This document shows positions 30,175 to 64,000 of a stretch of 64,000 bases of DNA, one piece after another. A program made the position numbers and the translations under genes. Where the stretch lies: contig CM121341.1 of assembly GCA_051530055.1 (NCBI GenBank), positions 8,162,784 through 8,226,783 on the forward strand, written 5' to 3'. The stretch comes from Neoechinorhynchus agilis (lineage: Eukaryota > Animalia > Acanthocephala). How positions within the stretch are numbered: the first letter of the stretch is position 1; every line of letters starts with the position of its first letter. Below the pieces are notes generated by a model. That model was not told where the DNA came from, did not search any database, and worked only from the letters and a program-made list of their open reading frames with translations.

Positions 30175-30600
30175 TGAAACGATAAGTCTCAAAAGTTCGC
30201 AGTTTTGTGGCTACAATGTACGACACGTTTACCGAGAATTTAGTCGTCTGCAAATGAGGGAGATATTAAACACGGCTGTCAACTATGCGGGTCAATTCTT
30301 TTTCTAAGTAGACACTGAGCTCAAGTGATAAAGTCGCCGCTGGCGGATAAATCTTCGAGAAGAAACGTAATTCCCGCGTATCTGACATTTGTAATAAATC
30401 CAGACCGCCTAGTGCGCATTAGTGTTGTTGCTCCTAGGTAGGCTTCCGACTTGGAGACGTTCAGTCGTAATCCTGCGGACGAAGCTTCGCACCATCGGCC
30501 TCTCGACCGAGTGCATGTACCTGATGTCCAAACCTGCGGTTCCTCTCGTACTTAGCAAGATTGCTATCACAACAACCAGCTCAACAGTAGGGTAAAACTA

Positions 30601-30635
<35 letters not shown>

Positions 30636-30681
30636 TCCTATTAATGGGTGAACAATCCAACGCTATGGGACTTTTGCATCC

Positions 30682-30719
<38 letters not shown>

Positions 30720-31175
30720 GACGTCGCTGTGGACGCTTGGCCGCCACAACCCAGTTATCCCTGTAGTTACTTTTCTGACACCTCTTGCTTAAAACTCGTA
30801 AAATTCAAAAGGATCGACAAGCCAAACTTTCATTGTCTTTATTCGTACTGAAAATCAGGATCAAGCAATCTTTTGCCCTTTCGCTCTATGCGAGGTTTCT
30901 GTCCACGCTGAGATTGCCTTAGGACACCTGTGTTAGGTTTTAACGGATGTACCGCCCCAGTCGAACTCCCAATCAGTCTGTGTTCTCAGACCAGACACTC
31001 CTTCGACACTAAAGAAAGGATTATATATCGCAATTAGCGAATTAACGCTACCTGATTCACTGAATAAGTAAAGAAACAATGATGGTAGTGGTATTTCACC
31101 GACGCTCATAATGTTTCTTCACAAAGAATGACTAGAGTCACGCTCCATAGGGTCTTCTTTCCCCGCTGTTACTCC

Positions 31176-33213: not shown

Positions 33214-33497
33214 TTTATTCCAGATTTATTATCGAACGGAAAATGGGTGTTTTATTTGCTTATTGCTTCAAATTTTCGACGCCTTGCGTCTTCGTCAGGA
33301 AGCTTTTCTTCGGTTGTCTGAAAAGGAATCAGAGGAGGGCAACGCTGTCCGTCAGCTCATCCCTCTTATTGAGCATCCCCTAGACCTTTTCAGACAACCG
33401 AAGAAAAGCTTCCTGACGAAGACGCAAGGCGTCGAAAATTTGAAGCAATAAGCAAATAAAACACCCATTTTCCGTTCGATAATAAATCTGGAATAAA
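33214..33497. repeat. Perfect inverted repeat (113 bp arms 33214-33326 and 33385-33497, 58 nt spacer)
   Basis: The arms are exact reverse complements. Near-identical 19 nt direct repeats AATAT(C/T)ATAAAGTATTTTA flank the structure at 33199-33217 and 33529-33547. Confidence 0.95.
33408..33446 (+). ncRNA. Minimal type I hammerhead ribozyme motif (mirror copy on the minus strand at 33265-33303)
   Basis: GCTTC-CTGACGA-A-GACGC-AAG-GCGTC-GAAA-AT-TT-GAAGC: 5 bp stem I, conserved core, 5 bp stem II, palindromic AATT in place of stem III. Confidence 0.8.
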
Positions 33498-33625
33498 CAT
33501 GAGGGTGTTGGGAAAAGAGGCTTTCCATAATATTATAAAGTATTTTAAATAGGAAAATTTAATTAAACAGTGTCACTTGTTATCTTAGAGTCCAATTAAA
33601 CTGTTGAAAATAAAATCCATATATT

Positions 33626-37833: not shown

Positions 37834-40069
37834 GCACACACAAACACTTAAATCAACAAGTTTTGATACGAACGAATATTTGTGGGTACACCGGCAAACG
37901 TTAAAGAATCTTCAACGTTAAAGATTGCGGTTGTCTGATGGAATTTTTTAATTTTTATATCCTTTTTCTCTCGCAAAAGTACACTCGAACGCTTCCTGAA
38001 TTTTTGGAAGCCAATCGTTTGCTGAAATCCTAAAAATTAGTATATTATCCAGGTACTTTTAATCATAAAACCTCAGCCGTTTATTTTCTTTAAAAAGTGA
38101 CCGCGTTAAAATATCCCATTAAATCATTGATTTAACTGAGATTTACGTCGAAATAATATCAAGCCACTGTATTATTTGGAGATCAAATGGTTTTTTTGTT
38201 TCGACCCATCGCGCCAACTAAACAGCTTCATGAATACGATTGAAAATTGTAATCTGGCTTGGTCTTCTATAAAAGTATTTAGAAGAAGTTAAAAGTAGAT
38301 TGCTTTAGATTTATTACAGTCGTAACTTTTTACTTAAAAAACCGACTGATTTGGGTTTTTTTAATGTGCAATGCAAAGTTCCGATCAGACAAAATGGCAA
38401 AAAGATAAAAACCGAAATATCCTTAAAATTAATATCTCCCTGTTATGACTAGTCGTGATTTAACTTTAGAAAATTAATTTGACATTATAAAAGACCTCAA
38501 AAAGCCAGCGTTTCTTGTATAACAGAAAAATGAATTAAACTTGTTGAATCCGATATTTCGGCATTGAAGCTTATATATTAATAAAGCAACCTTGATAAAT
38601 TCAATGCCACTTCAATTTTTTCTTGTCTTACCAAAAAAGATTAACAATTCAATTTTCAAACAAAACATAATGTTCACACTACGTACTACAGATTAATTTT
38701 ATAGGCAATCATTAATTGTTTTAATAAGAAAATAACAATTGCATAATGAGCTAAGCGTAAAAATAAAAACTTACAGCCAATCAGATGTTGAGATTTCGAA
38801 ACACGTGCGTTACTGATCAAACATTGGCGCAAAGCTAATAAGGGCAGCAAACTAAAACATGTTGGTGCGTCTTAACATCCTAACTGCTATGAAGGACTAG
38901 TATTTTTTCTAATATCGCTTGCATGATCCGAAAATAAACACAAAAGAGTCAAGTCTATGTAATATCGCTAGTTCTTAAATTACAGAGGCCATAAATCTGC
39001 CAAACGTCATCGCAAATCATTTTTTCTAATATTTTTTTACAGCCTCGTTGAAATATTAACGGACTCAATTTGACCTTTGGATGCCGGTGGCCATTAAGAA
39101 ATCACATAATGACCAAAGTATAAAACTGTTCCATAACCGTGAAATTATCCGATTCGGTTCTGGAATCGTTTTCAGCGCAGTCTTTTTCCACATAATTAAT
39201 TTCATGGTTTATATGAAGGGTACTCGTAATGACGCGAAAGGAGCAAATATCACAATTTGAATAAGGGCATAGATTGTATCTCGTACATTGAGATATTTAT
39301 CTTACAATTACGCCTAATTTTCTCACATTATAGAATCATAAATTTGCTCTTATCGTTTGAAAATACCCTTAATTTTTTTACTTTAACAAGTAAATATAAA
39401 CCCTTTTATTCATAGAGAAAATCCTTCACTATGCACACTAATTCTCCCCCCCCCAACATGTATAAATCTTTTTAAGTGGTTTTCCTGACAGGGAATTTTT
39501 AGAACATTCCTTCCTCTGCTTTATAGTCTTGCCATGAAGCCACACTGATTTCTTACATCAGAGAAGTGATTGAATCACTTAGACTGCCAAAAGGAAAACT
39601 AAAAGGCCGAGGGAGAGATTGCGAAAAAACAACAATTCAACCCCGTTCTTTAGGTTCCCTATAAACACCCGAGAGAGATCGCGTTAAAGAAGAATAAGTA
39701 AAAATTGATAATATATACATTCTTCTTCAATAATCTCCTTTCAAATTGGTTGTTTGGCTTACATAGGATTTATTGCATTCGCTACAACGAACGGATTTAC
39801 CGAAATTCTACGCCATAGTTTCTTCACGCGAACCTTTGTTTATTAATTACGTCATAGACACGGAAGAAAGGTACAACTCAAATGACACGGAAGAATCTAA
39901 TTCATTCGATTCTAAGTTCCTAATATTTCATATTGATTTTGTGTGTGTGTGTCCCATTTTCCGGGTCGTGTGAATGATTTTTGCATTCCATTCGTTTCTT
40001 CCGCCACACCGTTTCGCTAAAAAACATAGGCGTTTAAACATCCTAATTCCTCCCCCCCCGATTTCAGGA

Positions 40070-43000
40070 ATGTCCGGACGTAACACTCGGTCACTGTCGT
40101 TTCAGTCACTTGCTAAAAATGTATTACCCGGCTGGATGACCAGTATGGTTTCCAATAATCAAGATTCTGGTTCAAAAGACAACAATAAGTCGAATCTCCC
40201 TCCGATTACTCCTCCAATGGCTAATAAATTCAAAGTGGATATGGTTGAGATTATTCGGAACCGGAAGAGACGAACGATTGAACCGTTCTTCAAGTGTGAA
40301 GAAATAACTGAACAATCTTCATCGGGCAATTGTAGTAGTGCTAGAAGACCTAACCATCATCAATCTTTGACGAACAACAACTCACTGTTCTATCAACAGT
40401 CTCAACCAAGGAAACGGCTCATGTTCCACGATACTAGTTCATTACATGCTCCAATAACAAATCCTATAATCCTTAAGAAAGCTCGTTACGACGAAGTAAA
40501 ACAGTATGCCCGTGAGTTCGAAGATGCTACAAGACCGATAGTACCCATACCTCGTCGTCCTCGTCGATTCCATTTCTCACCAGTAGATAATCTTTGCTCT
40601 TGTCCCGATCCTAAAGATACATCGATAAAACCGCTTGGATTTCAAGAACGATATCTAGACCTTCTTCGTTATATAGCGAAAAGAGACGCTGATGAAGCAG
40701 CCGCTCACCCACCACGAACAAGCTTCCGACAACCTCCGTCTTCGGTCGTCGAAGCAGCATTGGCTGTGAAACGCAATAACGATGAACTTATCCAAGAAAT
40801 CGATAAAATCGTCACAAAACGATTTGAAGAGCAACGATCAGGGACATGGACGTGCCATAATTGCCATACGTTCGTCGTGAACTCGTTCCTTTGTCAAAAC
40901 TGCGGAATCAGCCGAATCGAGTCTCGTCAAATGCCCTATGAAATCGGCGGTGCTGTTCGAAGAAGCCGCACAATCAGTGTTTCAACTAGAGATGAACCTC
41001 AAAGTAGTGTTCCAGTGACGTCGTCCGTATCTATCAGTGAACCGGTTCTTATAAGTGAACCTGAGCAAACATCCGCCATCAATCAACAGCCTGACAAGTT
41101 GGCAAAATTGCCTTTTTCTATTGGATCCACTGAAGCTCAGAAAAAGACTGAAGCATCAACAAATGTTTCAAAACCAGCGGTCACTGAATCAGCGGTGAAA
41201 TCGTTTAATTTTGGTGCATTCGGCAACTTAGACACAACCCAATCTGCATCGATGGAACCAGTAAAATCCGACGATAATCAAGGTTTCTTTGGATCAACCA
41301 ATGTGATAACGACTTCAAGTGCTCCTATTCTTCTGAACGCGTTCACGAATCGTACAACCACCGCACCGGTCACTTTTACAACCACTACAGCAACTTCACC
41401 AAGTTTCTTTACTTTCGGAACTAAAACTACTGCACCAGTAACGAGTGCTTCAAGTGTATTTGCGTCTTGTCAAGCAAATTCATCCGAAGGCGTACCACCA
41501 TCTACTGAATTAACAACGAAAGCTGGATTCGAAAATCTTTTTACTAAGACTGCCGGTGCTTTTGGGAATCCTACAACGTGTGCCACAGTGCCATCGACTA
41601 ACTTGTTCACTGGATTTGGAGCTACTACAAGCAATCCATTCGGTGGAATCGGTTCGTCCTTAAAAGCTTTTAACGCGACTACCACTCCAGTAACAACGAC
41701 CACTACTGCGCCAAGTTTATTTAGCGGATTCGGAGCAAACACCGCTGTTACCATAACAACAACAGAGTCCGGAATTTTCGGCGGTATGGCGCAGTCAGCT
41801 GCATCGACAAGTACATTAGCTGGATTCGGAATCTCGACCAGTGCAATCGCAACAACGACGACTTCAGGTCTCTTTGGATCATTTTCTGCAATGACCACTG
41901 CTTCAAATACTCCATTTGGTGGATTTGGAAGTTCAACCGCAGCCGCAACAACAACTGCATCTAGTCTGTTCGGTGCATTCTCAAGTACGGCTAACTCTAC
42001 CACTGCCTCAAATATGTTCGGATCTTTCAGTGCTACAAACGCTTCCATGCCATTTGGTACTGCGATCACCACCACCACCGCCGCCGCCGCTACTCCAAAC
42101 CTATTCGGTGGATTATCGGCGAATTTGACAACCCAAAGTGGATTCAGTGGATTCGGTAGTACCGCAACTACCGCCGCCGCCGCTCCAAGCCTATTTGGTG
42201 GATTATCGGCGAACCAAACGACTCAAAGTGGATTCGGTGTCGCTTCAACTACAGCTCCAAGTCTATTCGGAGGATTTTCGACAACCGTTTCAACCACTCA
42301 GAGCCCATTCAGTGGATTTGGTAGTGCTATCACCACCACCGCCGCCGCAGCCGCTGCTGCTCCAAGCCTATTCGGTGGATTATCGGCGAATTTAACAACC
42401 CAAAGTGGATTCGGTAGTACCGCGACTTCGACCACCACCGCCGCCGCTCCAAGCCTATTTGGTGGATTATCGGCGAACCCAACGACTCAAAGTGGATTCG
42501 GTGTTGCATCAACTACAGCTCCAAGTCTATTCGGAGGATTTTCGACAACCGTTTCAACCACTCAGAGCCCATTTAGTGGATTTGGTAGTGCGATCACCAC
42601 CACCGCATCCAGCCTATTCGGTGGATTGGCGGAAACTACAAAGATAAGCAGTGGATTCGGAACCGCCGGTACGCCCTCGTCGTTCATGGGATTCACAAGA
42701 TCGGTAACATCTGAAGCTCTACCTTCTGGATTTGCTGGATTCGGCAAACTTAGCGTACCGTCCACTACAACCTCCACATCAATAACACCTTTCGGGCAAA
42801 AGTCCTCAATGTTCGGCACCGAACCAGCCAAATCCTTGTTTACCTTTGGATCACAACCAGAACAACAGCAGTCTGCTACAGGAATGACATTTTTCGGATC
42901 AGCTCAACAACAATCTTCATTTATGACGGCTCCGCCTACAGCTCCAATGGTATTCGGCAGTACATCGGGTGACACTTCGACCTTAAAGACGGCGTTTGTC

Positions 43001-43291
43001 TTTGGAGATGTTAAGAATCCGGACGTCGTGAAAGCACCTGAACTGTCATCGAATCCACAAACAATGCAATTCTCAGAGAGTCCATTTTTGCATATGCGGG
43101 AATCACAAACAACAACATCTACAACTGCATTTCCCAGTTTCACGGTCTCTCTTGCACCACCACCGCCGCCACCACCACAGCCTCCAAGTGAGAGCGGTAG
43201 CACAGAGACCAATCCATTTAACTTCGAAATTGATAATCCTGAAACCATTAGTCAGAGGAAAATTCGTCATGCCAGAAGGCAAAAGAAGTGA
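40070..43291 (+). CDS. NUP153: Nup153-like FG-repeat nucleoporin (likely start MSGRNT at 40070)
   Basis: One RanBP2-type zinc finger (WTCHNCHTFVVNSFLCQNCG), a long Ser/Thr-rich SLFG/FG region and a basic C-terminal RKIRHARRQKK like the Nup153/Nup1 tail. The ATG follows ATTTCAG-GA. Confidence 0.72.
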   Translation: MSGRNTRSLSFQSLAKNVLPGWMTSMVSNNQDSGSKDNNKSNLPPITPPMANKFKVDMVEIIRNRKRRTIEPFFKCEEITEQSSSGNCSSARRPNHHQSLTNNNSLFYQQSQPRKRLMFHDTSSLHAPITNPIILKKARYDEVKQYAREFEDATRPIVPIPRRPRRFHFSPVDNLCSCPDPKDTSIKPLGFQERYLDLLRYIAKRDADEAAAHPPRTSFRQPPSSVVEAALAVKRNNDELIQEIDKIVTKRFEEQRSGTWTCHNCHTFVVNSFLCQNCGISRIESRQMPYEIGGAVRRSRTISVSTRDEPQSSVPVTSSVSISEPVLISEPEQTSAINQQPDKLAKLPFSIGSTEAQKKTEASTNVSKPAVTESAVKSFNFGAFGNLDTTQSASMEPVKSDDNQGFFGSTNVITTSSAPILLNAFTNRTTTAPVTFTTTTATSPSFFTFGTKTTAPVTSASSVFASCQANSSEGVPPSTELTTKAGFENLFTKTAGAFGNPTTCATVPSTNLFTGFGATTSNPFGGIGSSLKAFNATTTPVTTTTTAPSLFSGFGANTAVTITTTESGIFGGMAQSAASTSTLAGFGISTSAIATTTTSGLFGSFSAMTTASNTPFGGFGSSTAAATTTASSLFGAFSSTANSTTASNMFGSFSATNASMPFGTAITTTTAAAATPNLFGGLSANLTTQSGFSGFGSTATTAAAAPSLFGGLSANQTTQSGFGVASTTAPSLFGGFSTTVSTTQSPFSGFGSAITTTAAAAAAAPSLFGGLSANLTTQSGFGSTATSTTTAAAPSLFGGLSANPTTQSGFGVASTTAPSLFGGFSTTVSTTQSPFSGFGSAITTTASSLFGGLAETTKISSGFGTAGTPSSFMGFTRSVTSEALPSGFAGFGKLSVPSTTTSTSITPFGQKSSMFGTEPAKSLFTFGSQPEQQQSATGMTFFGSAQQQSSFMTAPPTAPMVFGSTSGDTSTLKTAFVFGDVKNPDVVKAPELSSNPQTMQFSESPFLHMRESQTTTSTTAFPSFTVSLAPPPPPPPQPPSESGSTETNPFNFEIDNPETISQRKIRHARRQKK

Positions 43292-47599: not shown

Positions 47600-49205
47600 A
47601 AAGGGCAAGAACAATGCACCTTTAAGTTCTCATGAACCATCGAGTTCGAATACGAAAAATGAATGTGGCCGTTGATTTTGGGGTGTAGATTACGAGTCAG
47701 GGCGAATAGGAAGTCGGCTCGGGTGAGAACGCATGGTTATTTCCTCCAATAGAGCTTGTGAGGTCGTGTCTTAACCCAGATTCATTTTGCTTCATGATAT
47801 CCAAGAATATTTGGCAATAAGGAAAAAAGAAGCAGAGGTCGAGAGAGGTGTGAGGTAAAGGAGGATGAAACGAATCAGGATTACGATTGTTGTGCTCATG
47901 AGAAAAATGATCGATATGTGGTCGAAATTGTGTTTCAAGGGTTGAGAGGCGTTTTGATTGTTTAATGAAAATAACATCAATGCATTCGGTGGGGGGAAAG
48001 TCAGCTGTGCAAATTTTAGATGCTCTTTTACGAAGAATTTCAAGACGAAAGATTTGAGTTTTGGAAAGGTTGCAGAAGACGGGATAATCTTAAGTGATGG
48101 AGAGAAAAATAAAGGTGAAGTAAAATTTGAAGAGATCAGGTAAAGGGATTCCTAAATGTCGGAGGCGTCTGAGGAGACAAATTTTAAAGGTATTGCGCTT
48201 GAGGGAGAGAATGATGCGCGAAACCTATTTTAGGTTTGATTGAAATTGGAGACCCAGAATTCTGAGGGAGGTGACTCGTTGGATGTCAATTGGAAGCTCG
48301 GAGGGAGAATATAGGGTTTCGAGAGAATGAAGGGATCATTTCGAAGCATTTAGAGAAATTCAGGTGGAATTTTTGATTGGTGCAGAAATCTTTTATGTTT
48401 ATGATTTCATAAGAGGTTGAGGAGAGGGAAATGTGGGATGGTGAGTGGGCGAGATCGTCGGCATATAAGAAAAGTTTAGGGTGAGAGAAGAGAGGTTCGA
48501 GGTCGTTTAGGAAAACTTTATATGAGGTACGCCTTTGGTGAAGGTGATCACCGAGGAGGTAGCCTGGCAGTGAATGTACTGTTTACCACTGTGAAGATAC
48601 GATCCGAGCCAGCAGATCTGTCACGGGTTGGAGACGACCCGAAGAAGGAGTGAATTGTCAACGGCGTGGAATGTCTTCGGCAAATCCTATTGAATGAGAC
48701 GGGTGACGTGGAAGGGATCCTTCTCGAAGTTGCTTAAAAGCTTGCCATAAATGCAAAGTAGGACATCGGTTGCAGAAAATTTGGATCAGAAGCCGAATTG
48801 TAGAGGCGTTAATTCGTCGTTGAGAAGTGGAAGAAGGCGGGATTGAAAACATTTTTGGATGATTTTTGAAAGAGCGCTCAGAATGGATATTGGACGGATT
48901 GATTCGGTGGAAATCGTATGTCCTTTTATGGAACAAGTACAACTTTAGCAGTTTTAAGGCATGGGGGATAGATGCCATATAAAAAGCTGAGGTTTACATT
49001 GTGGTTAAAAGAGTCGATAAGTTCGGGGATGATGCAGCGAAGAGCCCAATTTGGGATTGAGAGGATGAATTTCGAGGTAATTTCTTAAGATGCTGTTGTA
49101 CTTCGTCTTGCTGTCTGATGTGGAGCAATGAATATTATTTGAGTCAAAGCAGAGGTTCTGATTGATGGAGTCAAGAACCTGTTTTAATTCAGAAGGGGTC
49201 AAATT
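47600..49205 (-). mobile_element. Decayed CR1/L2-like LINE (RT and 3' region), same family as 29250-30170
   Basis: LQFGF*SKFSATDVLLCIYGKLL and LFLYADDL. Nucleotide similarity to the 29 kb copy, e.g. CATCTTAAGAAATTAC and CATGAGCACAACA. The 3' boundary is approximate. Confidence 0.82.
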
Positions 49206-49299
49206 AGGGAAGGTGTTAAATCCTCTGATTTAACTTCCTCTATTTCTTTATTTTCTAAAAAAACAAAACGAACAACCAAAACCCACTTTACGCACAACA

Positions 49300-52200
49300 A
49301 GATTTATTCATCATTTAAACATATAAAGATGTTTTTAGACAGCAATCATATAGACAACCAGCTCTTTAAGCGATTGGAACAGAAAGTCTTCAGCTCTCCG
49401 GCCCAGGGAAACGGCAGAGACTCGAGGTGTTTGAAAAACGACTGAACAAAGGCAGTCTTGAGTTCAGGGGCGACCCCTTGAGAAGAAAATTAGGCCGGGA
49501 ATACCCCAGGTTTTCCATATGGCTTGAGCTTGGGACGCATTTAAGCCTGGTTTCATGTCTCGTCTAGCCATTTTATTGCCTATTTTAAGAAGCTTTTTCA
49601 TTTTATTAATATTTGTCCTAGGTGAAAGGTTCACAGTAAAGGTGTACCCTAGAACGCGTAATTTCAAGAGCACATTGTCCATTTTTGAATTATTCGAGGG
49701 ATTCAATAAATTGTTAACGCTGTCCGTCAGCTTCCTCTGATTCCTTTTCAGACAACCGAAGAAAAGCTTCCTGACGAAGACGCAAGGCGTCGAAAATTTG
49801 AAGCAATAAACAAATAAAGCACCTATTTTCCGTTCGATAATAAATCTGGAATAAACATGAGGGTGTTGGGAAAAGAGGCTTTCCATAATATCACAAATTT
49901 TGAAGTTTTTAACTATATATTGAGAAGCCAGTAAGAAGAGAATTGGGGAAAGCGGAGACCCTTGACGTACACCGTTGATCGGATAAAAAATAGTTTTTGA
50001 GATATCATTTTCGTAATAGAAAGATTTGGTGATCAAATTATGTAGAACACTAAAAAATTCCAGCATTCCAATTATAAAATAGAGAGAAATCTTGTCGAAG
50101 GCCTGTGAAATATCCACTACCAGAAGGGCTTTCATAGGCAGATTGGAGTTCTTAAAACTATCGTAGATACTAGTAAGGAGCGGAATGTACTGAATTTCCT
50201 TTTCGAAATCCATGGCAATTGGCCGAGATACAGTTGTGCTCCGATAAAAAATGAAAATAAACGACGCGCCAGCGCTCTCGTAAATTGTGACAAAAGGATT
50301 CTGTAAGGAAATGGGCGAAGGTCCTTTGGCTGTGAAATTGATTTTTTCCATTTTTGATAATGAAAATACGCCGTGAGACATTAATCTCTCGCCAAGCGTA
50401 ACGAGAGCAGTTTAGTATCGTTCGGGCCAAGTGAACGATACTATCATGGGCTAGTGAATTAAAAATTTTGTTACCAGAACTGGAATTCGAAGACGCCAAT
50501 TTTGGGTTATTTGACCAAACCTCAAGAATATCATCCGGAGTCAAATCCACTCTGTTTGCGATTTTTTCCGAAAAATTATTGTTGGAGGGATATCTTTGAG
50601 GGAACCCGAAGAGTGAAATTCGAAAATAGAATTTAATATATCTTCAAATGTCGAAACCTTAAGCCAGCCTGTTATTTTAGATTTGTAAGGTAGATTGCTC
50701 TTCGCTCGAGGAAAACGGTTTCAAGACGGCAAGTAAATTAGTTCTCTGATGTAACTGCTGTCGACAGTGAGCAGCCCAGAAATGACTGGTTAATGATTTG
50801 ACAAGAGGGACATCACCGGACCTCTTTGCCAAAAAGAGTTGGCGTCCAAGATAGGTCGAGAGAAAGTCCTCACCGTACGAAATAGAAAAATATTAGCTAA
50901 CTCGTTAAGAGCATTATTAACGAAAGGTACGAGATAAAAGGGCTTATTTTGATTAAGTGCTAGAGAGATAAGATTTTGACTAACTAGGCGGAAAAAGGCA
51001 ACGTTGAGTGGGGATATGTGGTAGGTTTTTCGTAGTGTAGAGTTAGGACCAAAGGACCAAATTAGGATATCATGCCCTAACAGGTCTAAAAGAGACACCT
51101 GACGATCGAATTGAATCAAGAAATTGAGGTGTCTCTTATAAATGATCAGATCTAAGAACGAGTGCGTATTATAAGCGAGATTATGAAAAGAGGGAGTAGA
51201 GGGATAGGTTAAAGAGTAAAAAGGTTGAACTGCGTTGACATTGGCCTTAGACCATTTTAAAGATGGATCATTGAAGTCTCCCACTATGAAGTCAATATTG
51301 GCTCTGAGAAGCCATTTGATTCTGCTTTCAATGTATGCTCGGTGGGTAAAACCTGGTTTAATGTATAAATTGATAAAGGTGAGAAATTTCTTATTTACAA
51401 GGATTTTGAAAAGGGGGTGAAGTAAAAGAAGACAATAGAGAGGATTAAGCGAAGAGTGAAAAATTGAAATAAGACCCTGGGAGGCGGGACTAAAATGAGC
51501 AGTGATAAAAAAGAGGAATTGAGGCAGATAGCTATAAAGTTGATCCAGGTATAAACACTTTCCGTTTCCTGCAGGAAAATGATTGAGACCCATGGTAAGA
51601 AACGAGCTAGCCTGTTAAGGTTGGTCGCCCCACCACAGTTCCACTGTGACACCCGAAAATCCCAAACCATTACCTGGGCCTTTGAGCTATCAGAGTTTTC
51701 TGGTGGCTGCATCTGGAATAAAAGCCGCAGTCCCATTATTAATAAGCGCGGTTTGAGCGTTGATGATTGTAGTAACGAAGTCAGAATCAGTTTCATCCAA
51801 TTCCAATATTGAATCATCACTATCAGATCGAGTCACATTGGAGGTTATATTGGATTTTTTGGCCGATCGAGGGTTCGTATCGGGCGAATTGAGTCTCTTT
51901 TGTTTCAAATCTCTTGGAAATTGGAAGCTGGAAGAGATTATATCTGGGAGATTGCCAAGATTGCCGATCTCAAAAGTAGTGATAGCTTCGGTAAAAAGTG
52001 CTTGCATAACCGTCAGTAGCTTGTTACAGACCTCCTCCAGACGACATTCTAGATGTTCCATCGTTACTAGCTGCGATGAGACCGTACTTTGAGATACATT
52101 AATGCCCGAACTTCTTGAGGTAGTCCACTAAAGGAGAAGATACCTGATGCATAGAATTGGAAACAGGAATCGCCGAGATCATTGGTTCACGCATAAATCG

Positions 52201-53000
52201 AGAGCGTGAGCTATTATTGAATTGTCCTTTTTGAGAGCAGGACCAACAGTTTTTGAAGGCTGAACAACCTTTATAGAAAACCGAATGTTGACCTCCGCAG
52301 TTTGCACAACGTTTAATTGATTTGTTTGGACAATTCTGAGAGGAGTGTTCTGTCTCCGCGCAGAAACGACATTTAGGAGTGTTCGAGATACATTGTTGGG
52401 TCCAATGGCCCCAGCCATGACAAATATTGCACTTTAGAAAAATATAGTCATCCTGAGGACTGCTAGATTTTTTGTGAAACGTATTTCAAAGCAGTTGAAA
52501 GCACTGTGCGTATTTTCGCATAATTCATTCCTAAATTATCTAGAGCCTTCGACCATGGCTAACGAGATCGGCTTGCCTGATCTGCGTGAATTGAGAAAAA
52601 AATTTAATTTTGACCTTGAAAAGCTTTTCAAATTCCGCTTTTTCTTCACAATTTAAATTTGGTTGCAGTCCATTCGCAAGGAATTGTACTTTTTGAGTGA
52701 CCGATTCAACTGAGTAGACATCACGCGGAAGATTGGAGCTTGCAAAGTCCTTTAGACTGGCTAGCCAGGCATTATTAATCAAGTAGACTCTTAAGATTCC
52801 ACCGAAATAGGTAACACGATCGATTCGTTTAATACCGTCGTTTTGAAACGAGCGTGCCCAGGGGGCAACGCTGTGATTATAAATTACTTCTTTAGGCATT
52901 ATCGGGTTTGATTTGATATTGAGGATGAAAGGCCATCGTTTGATTGGATAAACTAAGTATCCATGAGTATTGATTGCATATGTCGACTGTTCAGGGTTTT
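49300..53000 (-). mobile_element. Decayed two-ORF APE-type LINE: ORF1 with three zinc knuckles, then endonuclease, then RT
   Basis: ORF1 contains CNICHGWGHWTQQC, CRFCAETEHSSQNC and CANCGGQHSVFYKGC (~52260-52435). EN motifs are QWNCGG, IIFLQET, IVGDFND and FLDLII. RT motifs are PISLQN, VDISQAFDKI, GVRQGSPLSP and VLGY. The 3' end is AATAAATCTTGTTG at ~49300-49312. Confidence 0.88.
49766..49804 (+). ncRNA. Minimal hammerhead motif identical to that at 33408, antisense within the LINE RT ORF
   Basis: GCTTC-CTGACGA-A-GACGC-AAG-GCGTC-GAAA-AT-TT-GAAGC, inside a ~178 bp segment (49716-49893) shared with 33340-33535. Confidence 0.8.
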
Positions 53001-53199
53001 TTGAATCTGAGACCCCTCCAACAGGAGCTGAGAAGAGGGATCCGATCCCGAATAGGTGACTAATTGCTGTTGAGACTCCGAGGTTAAAGAAAACCTCTAA
53101 GCATTAGGTGGTCTTTTGCCACCAACCGCAACAAGTTTCGAAAACATGTTGCTGACCGTGCTTTTGCTATGTTGTTGCCCCATGTCCACTATCGGGCTT

Positions 53200-53720
53200 G
53201 CTTGATCGATCACGCAACCGGTGATGTCGTCGGTTATTTGATAAAAGAATTTGTCTACAATTTCGGCTAGTGCGGTCAGATCGAGAGTATCCTGGGAGGT
53301 GACCAGTTCACGGGCCTTTGTCGGCAGCTTGTTGATAAAGTGGTATCGAAACAGGGGATCAGCGGCCGGGTACGAGTTCAAAAAGTAGGCGTGAGGGTGT
53401 GTCTTCCTTGATTGCTAGCTCCACGATCATCTGCATCCGCTGGAATTCGGGAACGCTGAAGATATGTGTCAGGCGGCTTTTCAGCGCGTTGTACCGATCG
53501 CCGGGCGGTTGGCGACGAAACTCCTAAGTCGGCCCAGGGTCTCGGCATCCAGAGTCGTAAAAACGTAGTTGTACTTGGTTTGGTCCTGGGTGATCTTCCG
53601 GAGGTTGAATGTGGCCTCGACCTACGAGAACCACATCGCGACGTCCTTCGGTGTGAAAGTTGGTAGTCGCACCGAGACCGTGCTGATATGGGCAAGGTTT
53701 GCCGGTCAGATGTTGACGTC
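53200..53720 (-). mobile_element. Ty3/Gypsy gag N-terminal remnant (DUF7041-like), with stops and frameshifts
   Basis: Translation gives VSVRLPTFTPKDVAMWFS*VEATFNLRKITQDQTKYNYV, then DPLFRYHFINKLPTKARELV...LTALAEIVDKF. Confidence 0.82.
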
Positions 53721-54179
53721 TCATGGTTGCTGTTACCAATATAGCGGCGGCACGCAATCAAGAAGTATTTACTATTGTACTCTACAGTGGCCAAATGTGT
53801 TGCCTTTCCGTCCGTCCGCCGACACAAGACCTCCTACGGTCGTACGCCGGGCATTTGGATCTTCTGTCCTTATGGGGCGAAGAGTATACCCATTTGAAAC
53901 CTTATTTTTCATAACTTCATCAGTAACTGGAAACAAGGAAACTCCTTGGGCGATCTCATTACCCTTAACATTATATACAGCAACATCGGTAGGCGTTCTT
54001 TTGCCGCCTGTATCACACTCACGCAAACAAACCTTATCGATCTACATCATCTCTAAGTCACTCACACCACCGCCATCAGGCGGCTCGGAGCATCTCGTAT
54101 GAACAATTTTATCACACGCGACGCGAAAACCGAAATTAGCGTGCATAACTATCGTAATTTATTTGCCAAAAACAAACAA

Positions 54180-54262
54180 AACGCAACAACAACAACAAGA
54201 TTTATCGTATATTTAGGCAGTGTCAAACAACGCTACAACAACAACAAGATTTATTCGTCAAG
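54180..54262 (-). mobile_element. Two tandem LINE 3'-end-like tails (A(A/T)TAAATC-(TTG)n)
   Basis: The + strand has ACAACAACAACAAGATTTAT twice, matching the tail of the 49.3 kb LINE (ACAACAAGATTTATTC). Confidence 0.5.
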
Positions 54263-54384
54263 AGTCCATTTTTAGAAACAACGCAACGGCGTACACTAAT
54301 ATATATAACAGAACAAAATATCGATCAGTTAAATGTACGCACGTTGAACTCATCGATATTTACACACCTAGTTAATATCACCCA

Positions 54385-57300
54385 ACCCCCTCCTGGACCT
54401 CATCGTGGTATGGAAGGAAGAGTACCCGGGAAGGATGGCTGAATCGCTGTTGAAGATGGTAAGCCACGTTTCTGTTAAGATGACTACGTCGGCTTTTGAG
54501 GTAGATGAATTGAGTGAAATTTTACCTAGTTTAGGGAGGAGGTTACGATTACTGGAGTAGTCCTAGGAGACACAATTTGATCATAGATGACCAGTTAATC
54601 ACTTGTGGTGTTTATGAGCTCCATCTTGGAGTCAATTTGGAGCAAGGAGAACTCAAGTCGAGAGGTCGGAGGGCGATAGACGCCAGCAATGGTGAATTCT
54701 CTGAGGTAGATTCTCAGAGGAGCTATGAAATGGACTGCGATGAATTCTATATCGAAGTTTTGAAGAGAGCCTGTGATAGATAAAGAGTAAGGTAACGATT
54801 GCCGTAAGTAAACTGAGACCCCCCTCCTGGACCGTCATCGTGGTATGGAAGGAAGAGTACCCGGGAAGGATGGCTGAATCGCTGTTGAAGATGGTAAGCC
54901 ACGTTTCTGTTCAGATGACTACGTCGGCTTTGAGGTAGATGAATTGAGTGAAATTTTATCTAGTTTAGGAAGGAGGTTAAAGGAGTTCGGAGTAGACCAA
55001 GGAGACACAATTTGATCATAGATGACCAGTTAATCACTTGTGGTGCTTTTATGAGCTTCATCATAGAGTCAATTTGAAGCGAGGAGGACTCAGGTCGAGA
55101 TGCTGGAGGGTGATAGACGCCAGCAATGGTGAATTCCCTAAGGCCGTTTCTCAGAGGAGCTATGAAATGGACTGCGATAAATTCTAAATCGGGGTTTCGC
55201 AGAGAGCCTGTGAGAGATAAAGAGTAAGGTAGCGATTGCCGTACGTAAATTGAGACCCCCTCCTGGACGGTCATCACGGTAGGGAAGGAAGAGTACCCGG
55301 GAAGGATGGCTGACTCGCTGTTGAAGGGGGAAAGCCACGTTTCTGTTAAGATGACTACGTCGGCTTTTGAGGTAGATGAATTAAGTGAAATTTTATCTAG
55401 TTTAGGAAGGAGGTTACGAGTACTGGAGTAGTCCAACGAGACACAATTTGATCATAGATGACCAGTTAATCACTTGTGGTGTTTATGAGCTTCATCACGG
55501 AGTCAATTTGGAGCAAGGAGGACTCAAGTCGAGAGGTCGGAGGTGGCGATAGACGCCAGCAATGGCAGAATTCTGGAGGTAGATTCTCAGAGAGCTATGA
55601 AATGGACTGCGATGAATTATATCGAAGTTTTGAAGAGAGCCTGTGATAGATAAAGAGTAAGGTAACGATTGCCGTACGTAAACTGAGACCTCCTCCCGAC
55701 GGTCATCGGTATGGAAGGAAGAGCGGGTCGGGAAGGATGGCTGAATCGCTGTTGAAGATGGTAAGCCACGTTTCTATTAAGAATATCATTTGCCTTTTGA
55801 GGTAGATGAATTGAGTGAAATTTTATCTAGTTTAGGAAGGAGGTTGCGATTACTGAGAACTAAGGAGACACAATTTGATCATACATGACCAGTTAATCAC
55901 TGTGGTGCTTATGAGCTCCATCATGGAGTCAATTTTGAGGCAAGGAGGACTCAAGTCTAGAGGTTTGAGGCGATAGACGCCAATGGTGAATTCTCTAAGG
56001 CCGTTTCTCAGAGGAGCTATGAAATGGACTGCGATGAATTCTAAATCGGGGTTTTGAAGAGAGCCTGTGAAGGATAAAGGTAACGATTGCCGTACGTAAA
56101 TTGAGATCCCACTCCTGGGCGGTTATCGCGGTATGGAAGGAAGAGTAACCGGGAAGGATGGCTGAATCGCTGTTGAAGGGGGCATGCCACGTTTCTGTTG
56201 AGATGACTACGTCGGCTTTTGAGGTAGATGAAATGAGTGAAATTTCATCTAGTTTAGGAAGGAGGTTGCGATTACTGGAGTAGTCCAAGGAGACACAATT
56301 TGATCATACATGACCAGTTAATCACTTGTGGTAACAAGAGCTCCATCATGGAGTCAATTTGGAGCAAGGAGGACTCAAGTCTAGAGGTCAGAGGGCGATA
56401 GACGCCAGCAATGGTGAATTCCTCGAGGTCGTTTCTCAGAGGAGCTATGAAATGGACTTGACGAATCGTATATCGAAGTTTTGAAGAGAGCTCGTGATAG
56501 ATAAAGAGTAAGGTAACGATTGCCGTACGTAAACTGAGACCCCCTCCTGGACGGTCATCGTGGTATGGGCGAAGAGTACCTTGGAAGGATGGCTGAATCG
56601 CCGCTGAAGGGGTAAGCCACGTTTCTATTAAGATGACTACGTCGGCTTTTAAGGTAGATGAATTGAGTGAAATTTATCTAGTTTAGGAAGGAGGTTGCGA
56701 TTACTGGAGTAGTCCAAGGAGACACAATTTGATCATACATAAATGGTGCAAATTTGTGGAGTTTATGAGCTCCATCATCGAGTCAATTTGAAGCGAGGAG
56801 GACTCAGGTCGAGATGCTGGAGGGTGATAGACGCCAGCAATGGTGAATTCCCTAAGGCCGTTTCTCAGAGGAGCTATGAAATGGACTGCGATAAATTCTA
56901 AATCGGGGTTTCGCAGAGAGCCTGCGGATAGATAAAGAGTAAGGTAACGATTGCCGTACGTAAACTGAGACCCCCTTCCTGGACGGTTATCGTGGTATGG
57001 AAGGAAGAGTACCCGGGAAGGATGGCTGAATCGCTGTTGAAGATGGTAAGCCACGTTTCTATTAAGATGACTACGTCGGCTTTGAGGTAGATGAATTGAG
57101 TGAAATTTTATCTAGTTTAGGAAGGAGGTTGCGATTACTGGAGTAGTCCAACGAGACACAATTTGATCATACATGACCAGTTAATCACTTGTGGTGTTTA
57201 TGAGCTCCATCATGGAGTCAATTTGGAGCAAGGAGGACTCAAGTCGAGAGGTCGGAGTGCGATAGACGCCAGCAATGGTGAATTCTTTGAGGTCGTTTCT

Positions 57301-60300
57301 CAGAGGAGCTATGAAATGGACTGCGATGAATTCTATATCGAAGTTTTGAAGAGCGCCTGTGATAGATAAAGAGTAAGGTAACGATTGCCGTACGTAAACT
57401 GAGACCCCCCTCCTTGACGGTCATCGTGGTATGGAAGGAAGAGTACCCGGGAAGGATGGCTGAATCGCTGTTGAAGGGGTAAGCCACGTTTCTATTAAGA
57501 TGACTACGTCGGCTTTTGAGGTAGATGAATTGAGTGAACTTTTATCTAGTTTAGGAAGGAGGTTACGAATACTGGAGTGGTCCTGGGAGACACAATTTGA
57601 TCATAGATGACCAGTTAATCACTTGTAGAGTTTATGAGCTCCATCATGGAGTTAATTTGGAGCAAGGAGGACTCAAGTCGAGAGGTCGGTAGGCGATAGA
57701 CGCCAGCAATGGTGAATTCTCTAAGGAAATCGACTGCGATGAATTTTAAGTTGGGCTCTTGAAGCGAGCCTGTGAGAGATAAAGAATAAGGTAGCGATTG
57801 CTGTAAGTAAATTGAGACCATCATCCTGGGCGGTCATCGCGGTATGTATGGAAGGAAGAGTACCCGGGGAGGATGGCTGAATCGCTGTTGAAGGGGGTAA
57901 GCCAATTTTCTGTTAAGATTATCACGTCGGCTTTTGAGGTAGATCAAATGAGTGAAATTTCATCTAGTTTAGAAAGGAGGTTACGATTAAGTAGTCCTGG
58001 GAGACACAATTTGGATCATAGATGACCAGTTAATCACTTGTGGTGTTTATGAGCTCCATCATGGAGTCAATTTGGAGCAAGGAGGACTCACGTCGAGAGG
58101 TCGGAGGGCGATAGACGCCAGCAATGGTGAATTCTCTGAGGTAGATTCTCAGAGGAGCTATGAAATGGACTGCGATGAATTCTATATCGAAGTTTTGAAG
58201 GGAGCCTGTGATAGATAAAGAGTAAGGTAACGATTGCCGTACGTAAATTGAGACCCCCCTCCTGGACCGTCATCGTGGTATGGAAGGAAGAGTACCCGGG
58301 AAGGATGGCTGAATCGCTGTTGAAGATGGTAAGCCACGTTTCTGTTAAGATGACTACGTCGGCTTTTGAGGTAGATGAATTGAGTGAAATTTTGTCTAGT
58401 TTAGGGAGGAGGTTACGAGTACTGGAGTAGTCCTGGGAGACACAATTTGATCATACATGACCAGTTAATCACTTGTGGTGTTTATGAGCTCCATCTTGGA
58501 GTCAATTTGGAACAAGGAGGACTCAAGGCGAGAGGTCGGAGGGCGATAGACGCCAGCAATGGTGAATTCTCTGAGGTCGATTCTCAGAGGAGCTATGAAA
58601 TGGACTGCGATGAATTCTATATCGAAGTTTTGAAGAGAGCCTGTGATAGATAAAGAGTAAGGTAACGATTGCCGTACGTAAACTGAGACCCCCCTCCTTG
58701 ACGGTTATCGTGGTATGGAAGGAAGAGTACCCGGGAAGGATGTCTGAATCGCTGTTGAAGATGGTAAGCCACGTTTCTATTAAGATGACTACGTCGGCTT
58801 TTGAGGTAGATGAATTGAGTGAAATTTTATCTAGTTTAGGGAAGGAGGCTACGAGTACCGAGTAGTCCAAGGAGACACAATTTGATCATACATGACCATA
58901 ATCACTTGTGGTGTTTATGAGCTCCATCATGGAGCTCATTTGGAGCAAGGAGGAGACTCAAGTCGAGAGGTCGGAGGACGATATCAGCAATGGTGAATTC
59001 TCTGAGGTCGTTTCTCAGAAGAGCTAGAAAATGGACTGCGATGAATTCCATATCGAAGTTTTGAAGAGAGCCTGTGATAGATAAAGAGTAAGGTAACGAT
59101 TGCCGTACGTAAATTGAGACCCCCCCTCCAGGACGGTTATCGTTGTATGGAAGGAAGAGTACCCGGGAAGGATGGCTGAATCGCTGTTGAAGATGGTAAG
59201 CCACGTTTCTATTAAGATGACTACGTCGGCTTTTTAGGTAGATGAATTGAGTGAAATTTTATCTAGTTTAGGAAGGAGGTTACGAGTACTGGAGTAGTCC
59301 AAGGAGACACAATTTGATGATAGATGACGAGTTAATCACTTGTGGTGTTTATGAGCTTCATCACGGAGTCAATTTGGAGCAAGGAGGACTCACGTCGAGA
59401 GGTCGGAGGGCGATAGACGCCAGCAATGGTGAATTCTCTGAGGTAGATTCTCAGAGGAGCTATGAAATGGACTGCGATGAATTCTATATCGAAGTTTTGA
59501 AGAGAGCCTGTGATAGATAAAGAGTAAGGAAACGATTGCCGTAAGTAAACTGAGACCCCCCTCCTGGACCGTCATCGTGGTATGGAAGGAAGAGTACCCG
59601 GGAAGGATGGCTGAATCGCTGTTGAAGATGGTAAGCCACGTTTCTGTTAAGATGACTACGTCGCTTTTGAGGTAGATGAATTGAGGAATTTATCTAGTTT
59701 AGGAAGGAGGTTGCGATTAGTCGGAGTAGTCCAAGGAGACACAATTTGATCATACATGACCAGTTAATCACTTGTGGTGTTTATGAGCTCCATCATGGAG
59801 TCAATTTGGAGCAAGGAGGACTCAAGTCTAGAGGTCGGAGGGCGATAGACGCCAGCAATGGTGAATTCTCTGAGGTCGTTTCTCAGAGGAGCTATGAAAT
59901 GGACTGCGATGAATTCCATATCGAAGTTTTGAAGAGAGCCTGTGATAGATAAAGAGTAAGGTAACGATTGCCGTACGTAAACTGAGACCCCAATCCTGGA
60001 CGGTCATCGTGGTATGGAAGGAAGAGTACCCGGGAAGGATGGCTGAATCGCTGTTGAAGGGGGTAAGCCACGTTTCTATTAAGATGACTACGTCGGCTTT
60101 TGAGGTGATGAATTGAGTGAAATTTTATCTTGTTTAGGAAGGAGGTTGCGATTACTGGAGTAGTCCAAGGAGACACAATTTGATCATACATGACCAGTTA
60201 ATCACTTGTGGTGTTTATGAGCTCCATCATGGAGTCAATTTGGAGCAAGGAGGACTCAAGTCTAGAGGTCGGAGGGCGATAGACGCCAGCAATGGTGAAT

Positions 60301-63300
60301 TCTCTGAGGTCGATTCTCAGAGGAGCCATGAAACGGACTGCGATGAATTCTATATCGATGTTTTGAAGAGAGCCTGTGATAGATAAAGAGTAAGGTAACG
60401 ATTGCCGTACGTAAACTGAGACCCCCCCTCCTGGACGGTCATCGTGGTATGGAAGGAAGAGTACCCGGGAAGGATGGCTGTATCGCCGTTGAAGGGGGTA
60501 AGCCACGTTTCTATTAAGATGACTACGTCGGCTTTTAAGGTAGATGAATTGAGTGAAATTTTATCTAGTTTAGGAAGGAGGTTACGAGTACTGGAGTAGT
60601 CCAAGGAGACACAATTTGATCATACATGACCAGTTGTGAATTTGTGGAGTTTATGAGCTCCATCATAAAATCAATTCGGAGCAAGATGGACTCAGGACGG
60701 GAGGCCGGAGAGTGATAGACGCCAGCAATGGTGAATTCTCTAAGGCCGTTTCTCAAAGGAGCTATGAAATGTACTGCGATGAATTCTAAATCGGCGTTTT
60801 GAAGAGCGCCTGTGATAGATAAAGAGTAAGGTAACGATTGCCGTACGTAAACTGAGACTCCCCCTCCTGGACGGTTATCGTGGTATGGAAGGAAGAGTAC
60901 CCGGAAGGATGGCTGAATCGCTGTTGAAGATGGTAAGCCACGTTTCTATTAAGATGACTACGTCGGCTTTTGAGGTAGATGAATTGAGTGAAATTTTATC
61001 TAGTTTAGGAAGGAGGTTACGAGTACTGGAGTAGTCCTGGGAGACACAATTTGATCATACATGACCAGTTAATCACTTGTGGTGTTTATGAGCTCCATCA
61101 TGGAGTCAATTTGGAGCAAGGAGGACTCAAGTCGAGAGGTCGGAGGACGATAGACGCCAGCAATGGTGAATTCTCTGAGGTCGATTCTCAGAGGAGCTAT
61201 GAAATGGACTGCGATGAATTCTATATCGAAGTTTTGAAGAGCGCCTGTGATAGATAAAGAGTAAGGTAACGATTGCCGTACGTAAACTGAGACCCCCCTC
61301 CTTGACGGTCATCGTGGTATGGAAGGAAGAGTACCCGGGAAGGATGGCTGAATCGCTGTTGAAGATGGTAAGCCACGTTTCTATTAAGATGACTACGTCG
61401 GCTTTTGAGGTAGATGAATTGAGTGAAATTTTATGTAGTTTAGGAAGGAGGTTGCGATTACTGGAGTAGTCCAAGGAGACACAATTTGATCATACATGAC
61501 CAGTTAATCACTTGTGGTGTTTATGAGCTTCATCATGGAGTCAATTTGGAGCAAGGAGGACTCACGTCGAGAGGTCGGAGGGCGATAGACGCCAGCACGG
61601 TGAATTCTCTGAGGTAGATTCTCAGAGGAGCTATGAAATGGACTGCGATGAATTCTATATCGAAGTTGTAGAGAGCCTCTGAGATATAAAGAGTAAAGTA
61701 ACGATTGCCGTACGTAAACTGAGACCCCCTCCTTGACGGTCATCGTGGTATGGAAGGAAGAGTACTCCGGGAAGGATGGCTGGAATGTTGTTGAAGGAGG
61801 TAAGCCACGTTTCAGTTAAGATGACTACGTCGGCTTTTGAGGTAGATGAATTGAGTGAAATTTTATCAAGTTTAGGGAGGAGGTTGCGATTACTGGAGTA
61901 GTCCAAGGAGACACAATTTGATCATACATGACCAGTTAATCACTTGTGGTGTTTATGAGCTCCATCATGGAGTTAATTTGGAGCAAGGAGGACTCAAGTC
62001 GAGAGGTCGGAGGGCGATAGACGCCAGCAATGGTGAATTCTCTGAGGTAGATTCTCAGAGGAGCTATGAAATGGACTGCGATGAATTCTATATCGAAGTT
62101 TTGAAGAGAGCCTGTGATAGATAAAGAGTAAGGTAACGATTGCCGTACGTAAACTGGGACCCCCCTACTGGACCGTCATCGTGGTATGGAAGGAAGAGTA
62201 CCCGGGAAGGATGGCTGAATCGCTGTTGAAGATGGTAAGCCACGTTTCTGTTAAGATGACTATGTCGGCTTTTGAGGTAGATGAATTGAGTGAAATTTTA
62301 TCTAGTTTAGGGAGGAGGTTGCGATTACTGGAGTAGTCCAAGGAGACACAATTTGATCATACATGATTAGTTAATCACTTGTGGTGTTTATGAGCTCCAT
62401 CATGGAGTCAATTTGGAGCAAGGAGGACTCAAGTCGAGAGGTCGGAGGTTATAGACGCCAGCAATGGTGAATTCTCTGGAGGTCGATTCTCAGAGGAGCG
62501 AAATGGACTGCGATGAATTCTATATCGAAGTTTTGAAGAGAGCCTGTGATAGATAAAGAGTAAGGTGCACGATTGCCTACAAACTGAGACCCTCCTGGAC
62601 GGTCATCGTGGTATGGAAGGAAGAGTACCCGGGAAGGGATGGCTGAATCGCCGTTGAAGGGGGTAAGCCACGTTTCTATTAAGATGACTATGTAAGGAAG
62701 AGTACCCGGGAAGGATGGCTGAATCGCCGTTGAAGGGGGTAAGCCACGTTTCTGTTAAGATGACTACGTCTGCTTTTGAGGTAGATGAAGAATTGAGTGA
62801 AATTTTATCTAGTTTAGGAAGGAGGTTACGAGTACTGGAGTAGTCCAAGGAGACACAATTTGATCATAGATGACCAGTTAATCACTTGTGGTGTTTATGA
62901 GCTCCATCATGGAGTCAATTTGGAGCAAGGAGTACTCACGTCGAGAGGTCGGAGGGCGATAGACGCCAGCAATGGTGAATTCTCTGAGGTCGTTTCTCAG
63001 AGGAGCTATGAAATTGACTGCGATGAATTCTATATCGAAGTTTTGAAGAGAGCCTGTGATAGATAAAGAGTAAGGTAACGATTGCCGTACGTAAACTGAG
63101 ACTCCCCCTCCTGGACGGTTATCGTGGTATGGAAGGAAGAGTACCCGGGAAGGATGGCTGAATCGCTGATGAAGATGGTAAGCCACGTTTCTATTAAGAT
63201 GACTACGTCGGCTTTTGAGGTAGATGAATTGAGTGAAATTTTATCTAGTTTAGGATGGAGGTTACGAGTACTGGAGTAGTCCAACGAGACACAATTTGAT

Positions 63301-64000
63301 CATAGATGACCAGTTAATCACTTGTGGTGTTTATGAGCTTCATCACGGAGTCAATTTGGAGCAAGGAGGACTCAAGTCGAGAGGTCGGAGGGCGATAGAC
63401 GCCAGCAATGGTGAATTCTCTGAGGTCGATTCTCAGAGGAGCTATGAAATGGACTGCGATGAATTCTATATCGAAGTTTTGAAGAGAGCCTGTGATAGAT
63501 AAAGAGTAAGGTAACGATTGCCGTACGTAAATTGAGACCCCCCTCCTTGACGGTCATCGTGGTATGGAAGGAAGAGTACCCGGGAAGGATGGCTGAATCG
63601 CTGTTGAAGGGGGTAAGCCACGTTTCTATTAAGATGACTACGTCGGCTTTTGAGGTAGATGAATTGAGTGAAATTTTATCTAGTTTAGGAAGGAGGTTAC
63701 GAGTACTGGAGTAGTCCAAGGAGACACAATTTGATCATAGATGACCAGTTAATCACTTGTGGTGTTTATGAGCTCCATCATGGAGTCAATTTGGAGCAAG
63801 GAGGACTCAAGTCGAGAGGTCGGAGGGCGATAGACGCCAGCAATGGTGAATTCTCTGAGGTCGATTCTCAGAGGAGCTAGGAAATGGACTGCGATGAATT
63901 CTATATCGAAGTTTTGAAGAGAGCCCGTGATAGATAAAGAGTAAGGTAACGATTGCCGTACGTAAACTGAGACCCCCCTCCTTGACGGTCATCGTGGTAT
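54385..64000 (-). repeat. Satellite of ~435 bp units (~22 copies, continues beyond the window) derived from the N-terminal half of a CR1/L2-type LINE APE endonuclease
   Basis: Each unit translates, with varying frameshifts, to YSSTRNLLPKLDKIS..ADVVILTETWL..LPGY..GGGVSIYVRQ..EFIAV..GVYRPP. Spacing of the recurrent + strand ORF is ~432-437 bp. Confidence 0.93.

Follow-up and report, generated by a model that had tools for sequence, protein, structure and literature searches.

The stretch of DNA analysed here, referred to below as the window, comprises 64,000 nucleotides of the acanthocephalan Neoechinorhynchus agilis, and its right-hand part is occupied by a tandem array of 435-bp units. The array lies at ~8.217-8.227 Mb and beyond on CM121341.1, a 19.4 Mb chromosome of assembly GCA_051530055.1. 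It is most probably a non-coding satellite, and its monomer a dead internal fragment of open reading frame 2 (ORF2) of a long interspersed nuclear element (LINE), namely the first ~60% of the apurinic/apyrimidinic-type (APE) endonuclease domain. The units are arranged head to tail, share a single junction, are homologous to LINE APE endonucleases and have lost their coding capacity. They also share variants in a patchy manner and become more alike from the edge of the array towards its interior. The core of the initial annotation of this DNA, which had described a satellite made of the N-terminal part of a LINE APE domain without the downstream catalytic residues, is supported by these sequence comparisons.

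Structure and identity of the repeat unit

The array (54386..64000, with the sense of the ancestral LINE ORF on the minus strand) contains ~22 head-to-tail units and extends over at least 9.6 kb, as determined from Tandem Repeats Finder (TRF), a unit table and a consensus. TRF gives a period of 435 bp with 19.2 copies and 89% matches at 54386-62690, and the same period again with 3.0 copies and 96% matches at 62689-64000. The earlier count of about 22 units of ~435 bp over 54385-64000 is thereby confirmed. An anchor motif recurs along the array at spacings of 417-439 bp, with the single exception of an extra occurrence 76 bp after the preceding one. This exception is due to an internal 76-bp duplication in unit 20 (62612..62766, minus strand; TRF period 76, 2.0 copies, 96% matches), which is 515 bp long. 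The plus strand of the array has a strong excess of G over C (skew ~+0.29).

The left boundary of the array is abrupt (54385..54386). When the flank is compared with internal units and read in the LINE sense, the last unit breaks within the G-run of the RPGGG/V codons and is followed by unrelated sequence; the same comparison found no GDFN, reverse transcriptase (RT) or poly(A) at this boundary. Within the array, consecutive units are connected by a junction of 17 nt. In one example (63735..63751, minus strand), it leads from the end of one fragment (ELINTTSD, a stop codon and LVMYD) to the beginning of the next (SNCVSLDYSS). A tblastn search with the two half-peptides along the array revealed the identical junction and spacing in nearly all units. 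One type of junction is common to the units, which points to a single origin of the array in one founding duplication.

The minus strand of each unit corresponds to the N-terminal ~60% of the LINE APE domain and contains the motifs I(L/I)ETWL, PGYSSF, RPGGG/VSVYV and VYRPP. Its translation consists of three parts, each of which is in a different frame of the consensus: a first part ending in SNCVSLDYSSNRNLLPKLDKISLNSSTSKADVVILIETWLTIFNSDSAILPGYSSF, then YHDDRPGGG, and finally VSVYVRQSLPYSLSITGSLQNFDIEFIAVHFIAPLRIDLREFTIAGVYRPPTSRLESSLLQIDSMMELINTTSD followed by a stop codon and LVMYD. The initial annotation had assigned to the unit the Asn-motif region, ETW, GY, GGGV and YRPP of what it called half of the domain. 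All of these motifs were found on the minus strand, with the refinement that they are spread over three frames and that GGGV is recovered only when frameshifts are allowed; the N-terminal character of the fragment stands, and its extent is corrected from half to ~60%. The ETW/GGGV/YRPP motif style is presumably that of the CR1/L2/jockey-like group of LINEs.

In a multiple alignment with LINE ORF2 proteins, the unit begins ~8 residues ahead of the NxRSL motif and extends as far as the GD of GDxN or stops immediately in front of it. In one matched protein (P0007), the last residue of the BLAST alignment is 188, next to the GDMN that begins at 189. The catalytic Asp and His located beyond this point are consequently missing from the unit, as had been proposed when the end of the unit was placed near GDFN. 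At the Asn position of NxRSL the units carry S or T. Of the catalytic residues that a functional Exo_endo_phos domain requires (N, E, the D/N in GDxN, and a D and an H further on), the unit has an incomplete set.

The two halves of the APE fragment are joined in one frame by a single ORF, located in unit 2 (54960..55436, minus strand, 158 aa; ILTETWL...PGYSSF...GVSIYVRQ...EFIAVHF...IAGVYHPP). Exo_endo_phos is the only Pfam family matched by this ORF (E=0.0022, profile positions 29-116 of 225), at a score of 18.2 bits, which is below the curated cut-off of 24.5 bits. The frameshift-corrected majority consensus also remains under the cut-off (21.1 bits), and a frameshift-corrected conceptual peptide composed of unit 2, the middle segment of the consensus and the tail exceeds it (25.9 bits, E=9.6e-6). 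The Exo_endo_phos homology on which the initial annotation depended is thus present, below the cut-off in the raw sequence and above it after correction.

An exhaustive phmmer search of 1.84 billion representative proteins with the unit-2 peptide returned 113 matches with E<=1e-3. The lowest E-value is 2e-8, and the matches extend over query residues ~5-125, where identity is 30-40%. When the consensus peptide was used in a word-indexed protein search, no match was obtained. Ten of the matched proteins were scanned against Pfam. The best match (P0001) contains no Pfam family, while the nine more distant proteins are LINE ORF2 proteins or fragments of them, with Exo_endo_phos in seven and RVT_1 in six; the stretch similar to the unit is located N-terminally within the nuclease domain. 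Cluster names of the top LINE matches carried no taxonomic information, an uninformative metagenome label being the only one obtained. Judging from these searches, the homology of the unit to the LINE APE endonuclease is real, though remote.

Unit variation, coding state and dispersed relatives

Pairwise identity between units ranges from 85 to 98%. Interior units are 94-98% alike, and units 2-9, by the left edge, 85-92%. No higher-order repeat was found across the array, as the mean identity is flat (92-94%) at lags 1-11, and the only sign of the higher-order structure that the initial annotation had proposed to look for is a local dimer. This dimer is formed by units 2-7, in which B-type and A-type units alternate and marker strings lie exactly 857 bp apart. 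The more diverged edge zone as a whole (units 2-8, 54820..57822, minus strand) contains B-type units 2, 4, 6 and partly 8, with A-type units 3, 5 and 7 between them.

The suggestion that sub-variants recur in non-adjacent units proved correct. The string GGCCGTTTCTC occurs at 55142, 55999, 56856 and 60744, and CTAAATCGG at 55184, 56041, 56898 and 60786, in both cases in units 2, 4, 6 and 15. According to marker positions and tblastn, unit 15 (60424..60858, minus strand), located in the interior of the array, contains a B-type patch (RNG/ADLE) among neighbours that are otherwise A-type, and this patch looks like the footprint of gene conversion or unequal exchange. A minor allele is common to at least three units at 43 alignment columns. 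Such non-adjacent sub-variants fit unequal exchange or gene conversion between units.

The consensus is interrupted by two 1-bp frameshifts, located between PGYSSF and YHDDR and within the G-run ahead of VSVYV, and by two stop codons where one unit meets the next. Further stops or indels occur in many units, and only 1 of the 22 retains a through-ORF; each half-peptide taken separately is open in many interior units. By codon position, substitutions amount to 83/65/55 and 55/75/53 for the two halves, without an excess at third positions, and the purifying selection among units that had been put forward for testing is not seen in these counts. Neither a conserved nor a hypervariable 30-bp box is significant (P=0.31 and 0.17, respectively), and the unit as single-stranded DNA folds no better than shuffled sequence (z=0.36). 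An Rfam scan of the array, which would cover satellite ribozymes, gave no match, and a tRNA search found none. The array is non-coding and without detectable sequence constraint. As a multi-kilobase series of head-to-tail monomers of this kind, it has the structure of a satellite DNA. A sequence-specific function seems unlikely, and nothing in the boxes, the DNA fold or the coding constraint appears to support one.

Relatives beyond the window were sought in protein collections and in a stretch of another chromosome, CM121342.1, labelled L002. Two dispersed fragments of the APE-derived family are present there, each ~90% identical to the consensus and surrounded by unrelated sequence: one of ~190 bp (L002 10757-10944, plus strand) and one of 137 bp (L002 16727-16863, minus strand). 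The first maintains its reading frame across QEGGSVYVR, at a point where the satellite consensus is frameshifted. It also carries the B-type states (AACGGC, CCCGA) of the edge units. Since the B-type is shared with a fragment on another chromosome, it is probably ancestral, and the homogenised A-type majority derived.

The best phmmer match is a gene model on CM121342.1. In this model (P0001 / KAL7672677.1, annotated as 'hypothetical protein', L002 10001-11060, plus strand), the last exon traverses the ~190-bp fragment in its original frame, which represents either exonisation or an annotation artefact.

A parent LINE, whose identification the initial annotation had proposed, was found neither in the window nor in the protein collections, and the same holds for any longer copy. 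Two ORFs of the array, looked up by exact match in a gene-position index so as to reach sequence outside the window, had no entry there. Searches of positions 1-54384 by tblastn and blastn yielded no parent and no other copies of the array's family, and neither the C-terminal half of the APE domain nor the RT of this family was found in 52061-54385. A decayed LINE does lie to the left of the array (approximately 47982-52061, minus strand; RVT_1 match at E=8e-12). Its APE domain reads IFLQETE...GDFND and belongs to a different family, and this element was ruled out as the parent.

Origin of the array and alternative explanations

Under the favoured explanation, one already decaying LINE copy would have undergone tandem duplication through illegitimate recombination or slippage, with one breakpoint a few codons upstream of NxRSL and the other at GDxN. 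The dimer would then have grown through unequal exchange between sister chromatids or homologues, replication slippage and gene conversion, and exchange together with gene conversion may have homogenised the interior of the array. The array would make no protein and would survive as tandem DNA that is neutral or selfish. If it had an effect, such as the nucleation of heterochromatin or a supply of small RNAs, this would stem from repetitiveness and not from the endonuclease sequence. A repeat-dependent role of the array in heterochromatin, centromere or small-RNA production is possible.

It is highly improbable that the units were laid down singly by LINE machinery, through target-primed or double insertion of truncated copies, or that they remain the coding sequence of a nuclease-like protein, repeated or domesticated. 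Double insertions of transposable elements (TEs) are documented as satellite seeds in Drosophila (PMC5932611). However, retrotransposition always brings the 3' end of the element, and it did not build this array, because the units contain no LINE 3' end, RT or poly(A); moreover, one internal junction is used throughout. A coding role would agree with a period divisible by three and with the open half-peptides of many interior units, but it is opposed by the frameshifts and stops of the consensus, by the lack of codon-position bias and by the absence of catalytic residues beyond GD. Both the retrotransposition-built tandem and the coding repeat protein were discarded on unit anatomy. Also opposed by unit structure, and improbable, is an assembly artefact, in which the long-read hybrid assembler would have expanded a short tandem or a single copy too far or joined it wrongly. 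According to the genome paper, the assembly was produced from pooled worms with MaSuRCA as a hybrid of Oxford Nanopore Technologies (ONT) and Illumina reads and was scaffolded with Hi-C; the ONT reads are of the R9.4 type, Flye was also involved, and tandem arrays are error-prone in such builds (PMC12690905). Nevertheless, the differences between units are structured, as seen in the 43 columns with shared minor alleles. The A and B variants, the 76-bp duplication confined to one unit and the edge-to-centre gradient are not products of read error or artificial duplication, and ONT reads of at least 5 kb cover many units.

Two further explanations assign a biological role to the array. It is unlikely, though less so than an artefact, that the array is the whole or a part of the centromeric or pericentromeric satellite of its chromosome, with the repeat structure used for kinetochore or heterochromatin assembly. 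Consistent with such a role are its position ~8.22 Mb along a 19.4 Mb chromosome, its extension past the end of the window and the abundance of tandem DNA around it: seven unrelated arrays, including those of 394 bp and 435 bp, make up ~27.4 kb or ~43% of the window, and a 21-kb sample of another chromosome holds just one 90-bp repeat. In addition, acanthocephalan chromosomes are monocentric, and Acanthocephalus satellites have been located at centromeric and pericentromeric sites by fluorescence in situ hybridisation, as described in the satellitome study (PMC11758010). On the other hand, apparently intact genes are interspersed with the arrays, the monomer has no conserved box, dyad or fold signal, and none of the seven arrays stands out. 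A source of PIWI-interacting or small interfering RNAs, whose transcripts would silence a related LINE family as an antisense trap or decoy, is doubtful as well and carries a somewhat lower probability. All units have the same orientation, dispersed relatives exist, one of them inside an RNA-seq-guided gene model that hints at transcription of family members, and small-RNA data sets have been published for N. agilis (PMC12256650). Yet the protein search detected no active or intact target LINE of the array's family, so that perhaps no target remains, and the array spans just one short segment of the element. That the array is either a centromere-associated satellite of the largest N. agilis chromosome or a dedicated small-RNA source is an unlikely proposition.

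Several points weigh against the reading of the array as a non-coding LINE-derived satellite without a sequence-specific role. Neither the window nor the protein collections yielded a parent LINE, and beyond the gene model P0001 the best identity is only 30-40% (next-best ~36-40%). The right end of the array, which continues past position 64000, and its genomic copy number lie outside the window. With a hybrid build from pooled worms, the exact number of units, and perhaps some of the indels in G-runs, may be imprecise. The tandem-rich setting in the middle of a chromosome makes a chromosomal role of the array possible. Finally, the claim that there is no sequence-specific function is inferred from the absence of constraint among only 22 units.

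Genomic setting and relation to known satellites

The other six tandem arrays of the window are found to the left of the 435-bp array. They comprise an AT-rich array with periods of 105/317 bp that runs off the left end of the window (1-2190), arrays of 223/270 bp (2835-4339) and 127 bp (8980-9650), a 394-bp array of ~19 units with sub-periods of 203/182 bp (9965-17577), a 226-bp array of 16 units (21448-25051) and a 455-bp array of 2.9 copies with 99% identity (27119-28436). The 394-bp array sits exactly between two divergent intron-less multi-KH (vigilin-like) paralogues of 1125 and 1165 aa (4790-8167, minus strand, and 17672-21169, plus strand). Each of its units holds an ORF of 119-136 aa, for which no Pfam match was obtained.

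The genes located between the arrays are apparently intact and mostly intron-less, and include KH/vigilin-like, WD40, V-ATPase G and phenylalanine-glycine (FG) nucleoporin genes. The last of these is an intron-less FG-repeat nucleoporin-like ORF of 1105 aa (39974-43291, plus strand), whose repeats at 42052-42606 contain a 264-bp in-frame coding tandem duplication. It also has a cysteine-rich CxxC...CxxC segment that appears zinc-finger-like by eye and has no domain match. On CM121342.1, two intron-less TUDOR-domain paralogues of 402 aa, belonging to the same 90% cluster, are arranged head to head ~900 bp apart (L002 5112-6320, minus strand, and 7232-8440, plus strand), an arrangement resembling the inverted KH pair of the window.

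Other repeat-related features of the window are fragmentary. A partial 3' copy of the neighbouring decayed LINE is present at 29259-30079 (plus strand; 74-83% identity over three pieces of alignment, of which the longest has 570 bp at 77%). It adjoins an orphan 28S rRNA fragment (30163-31173, minus strand), which represents the 3' 1 kb of the gene (Rfam LSU_rRNA_eukarya positions 2390-3399, 723 bits) and is distant from any complete ribosomal DNA unit in the window. A small element with inverted halves occurs in ~97% identical copies at 33214-33539, in an intergenic position, and at 49733-49897, where it interrupts the RT region of the decayed LINE beside the array. Possibly, this element is an insertion similar to a miniature inverted-repeat transposable element.

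The initial annotation had regarded a satellite made of an endonuclease segment as unusual. This was overstated, as satellites derived from LINE ORF2 are already on record, including chicken HinfI/CR1, Phodopus PROsat and Phoca Pvc20, and the common cetacean satellite originated in the 3' part of L1 (PMC9659126). As in chicken HinfI (SCR1), the N. agilis monomer includes part of the ORF2 of a LINE (PMC9659126). Unlike it, the N. agilis unit comes from the 5' endonuclease part and has no 3' end, whereas the chicken repeat includes the CR1 3' untranslated region and the adjacent end of ORF2; the host here is, moreover, an acanthocephalan. The L1-derived PROsat of Phodopus roborovskii, Pvc20 of Phoca vitulina and the cetacean satellite likewise consist of non-coding tandem units homologous to an internal or terminal LINE segment, and their growth is thought to have proceeded via unequal exchange, as is proposed for the N. 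agilis array (PMC9659126). They differ from it in the LINE clade and in the segment involved. PROsat, for instance, is L1-like only in a small region of its unit, in contrast to the 435-bp unit, essentially all of which is one continuous APE fragment with just a 17-nt junction.

TE tandems are known satellite seeds in Drosophila (McGurk & Barbash 2018, PMC5932611). The N. agilis array resembles the double-insertion tandems described there in that TE sequence was turned into a tandem array and amplified by recombination. However, units arising from double insertions are bounded by element termini, while the N. agilis unit has two internal breakpoints and no terminus. Therefore, duplication within one copy, by illegitimate recombination or slippage, fits better than double insertion.

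Within the phylum, the first acanthocephalan satellitome describes tandem repeats of Acanthocephalus that form clusters, and these are centromeric, pericentromeric, interstitial or subtelomeric (PMC11758010). The two systems are set side by side here by description and not by sequence, and they differ in genus and class (Eoacanthocephala for N. agilis, Palaeacanthocephala for Acanthocephalus). A term search of the satellitome study turned up no mention of a TE-derived monomer (PMC11758010), and a term search of the N. agilis genome paper turned up no mention of satellite DNA (PMC12690905). The N. agilis array belongs to a somewhat less common type, the entire unit being derived from the 5' endonuclease part of ORF2, and within the literature searched, a TE-derived satellite of this kind is new for Acanthocephala.

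Current ideas on satellites or LINEs are unchanged by the array. Its value lies in being a clean and datable case of a piece of transposon coding sequence turning into satellite DNA, with a single junction, a gradient of homogenisation from edge to centre, and ancestral variants that survive at the edge of the array as well as in copies dispersed elsewhere. The genome of the host has been assembled only recently and is very small, with 46.2 Mb in three major scaffolds (PMC12690905). If a centromeric or small-RNA role were true, a dead endonuclease fragment would have acquired a function as chromosomal DNA, and this in a genome (46 Mb) that ranks among the most reduced known from animals. The 435-bp unit might also help to mark chromosomes in cytogenetic work on N. 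agilis, and satellite turnover could be studied with it as a test case.

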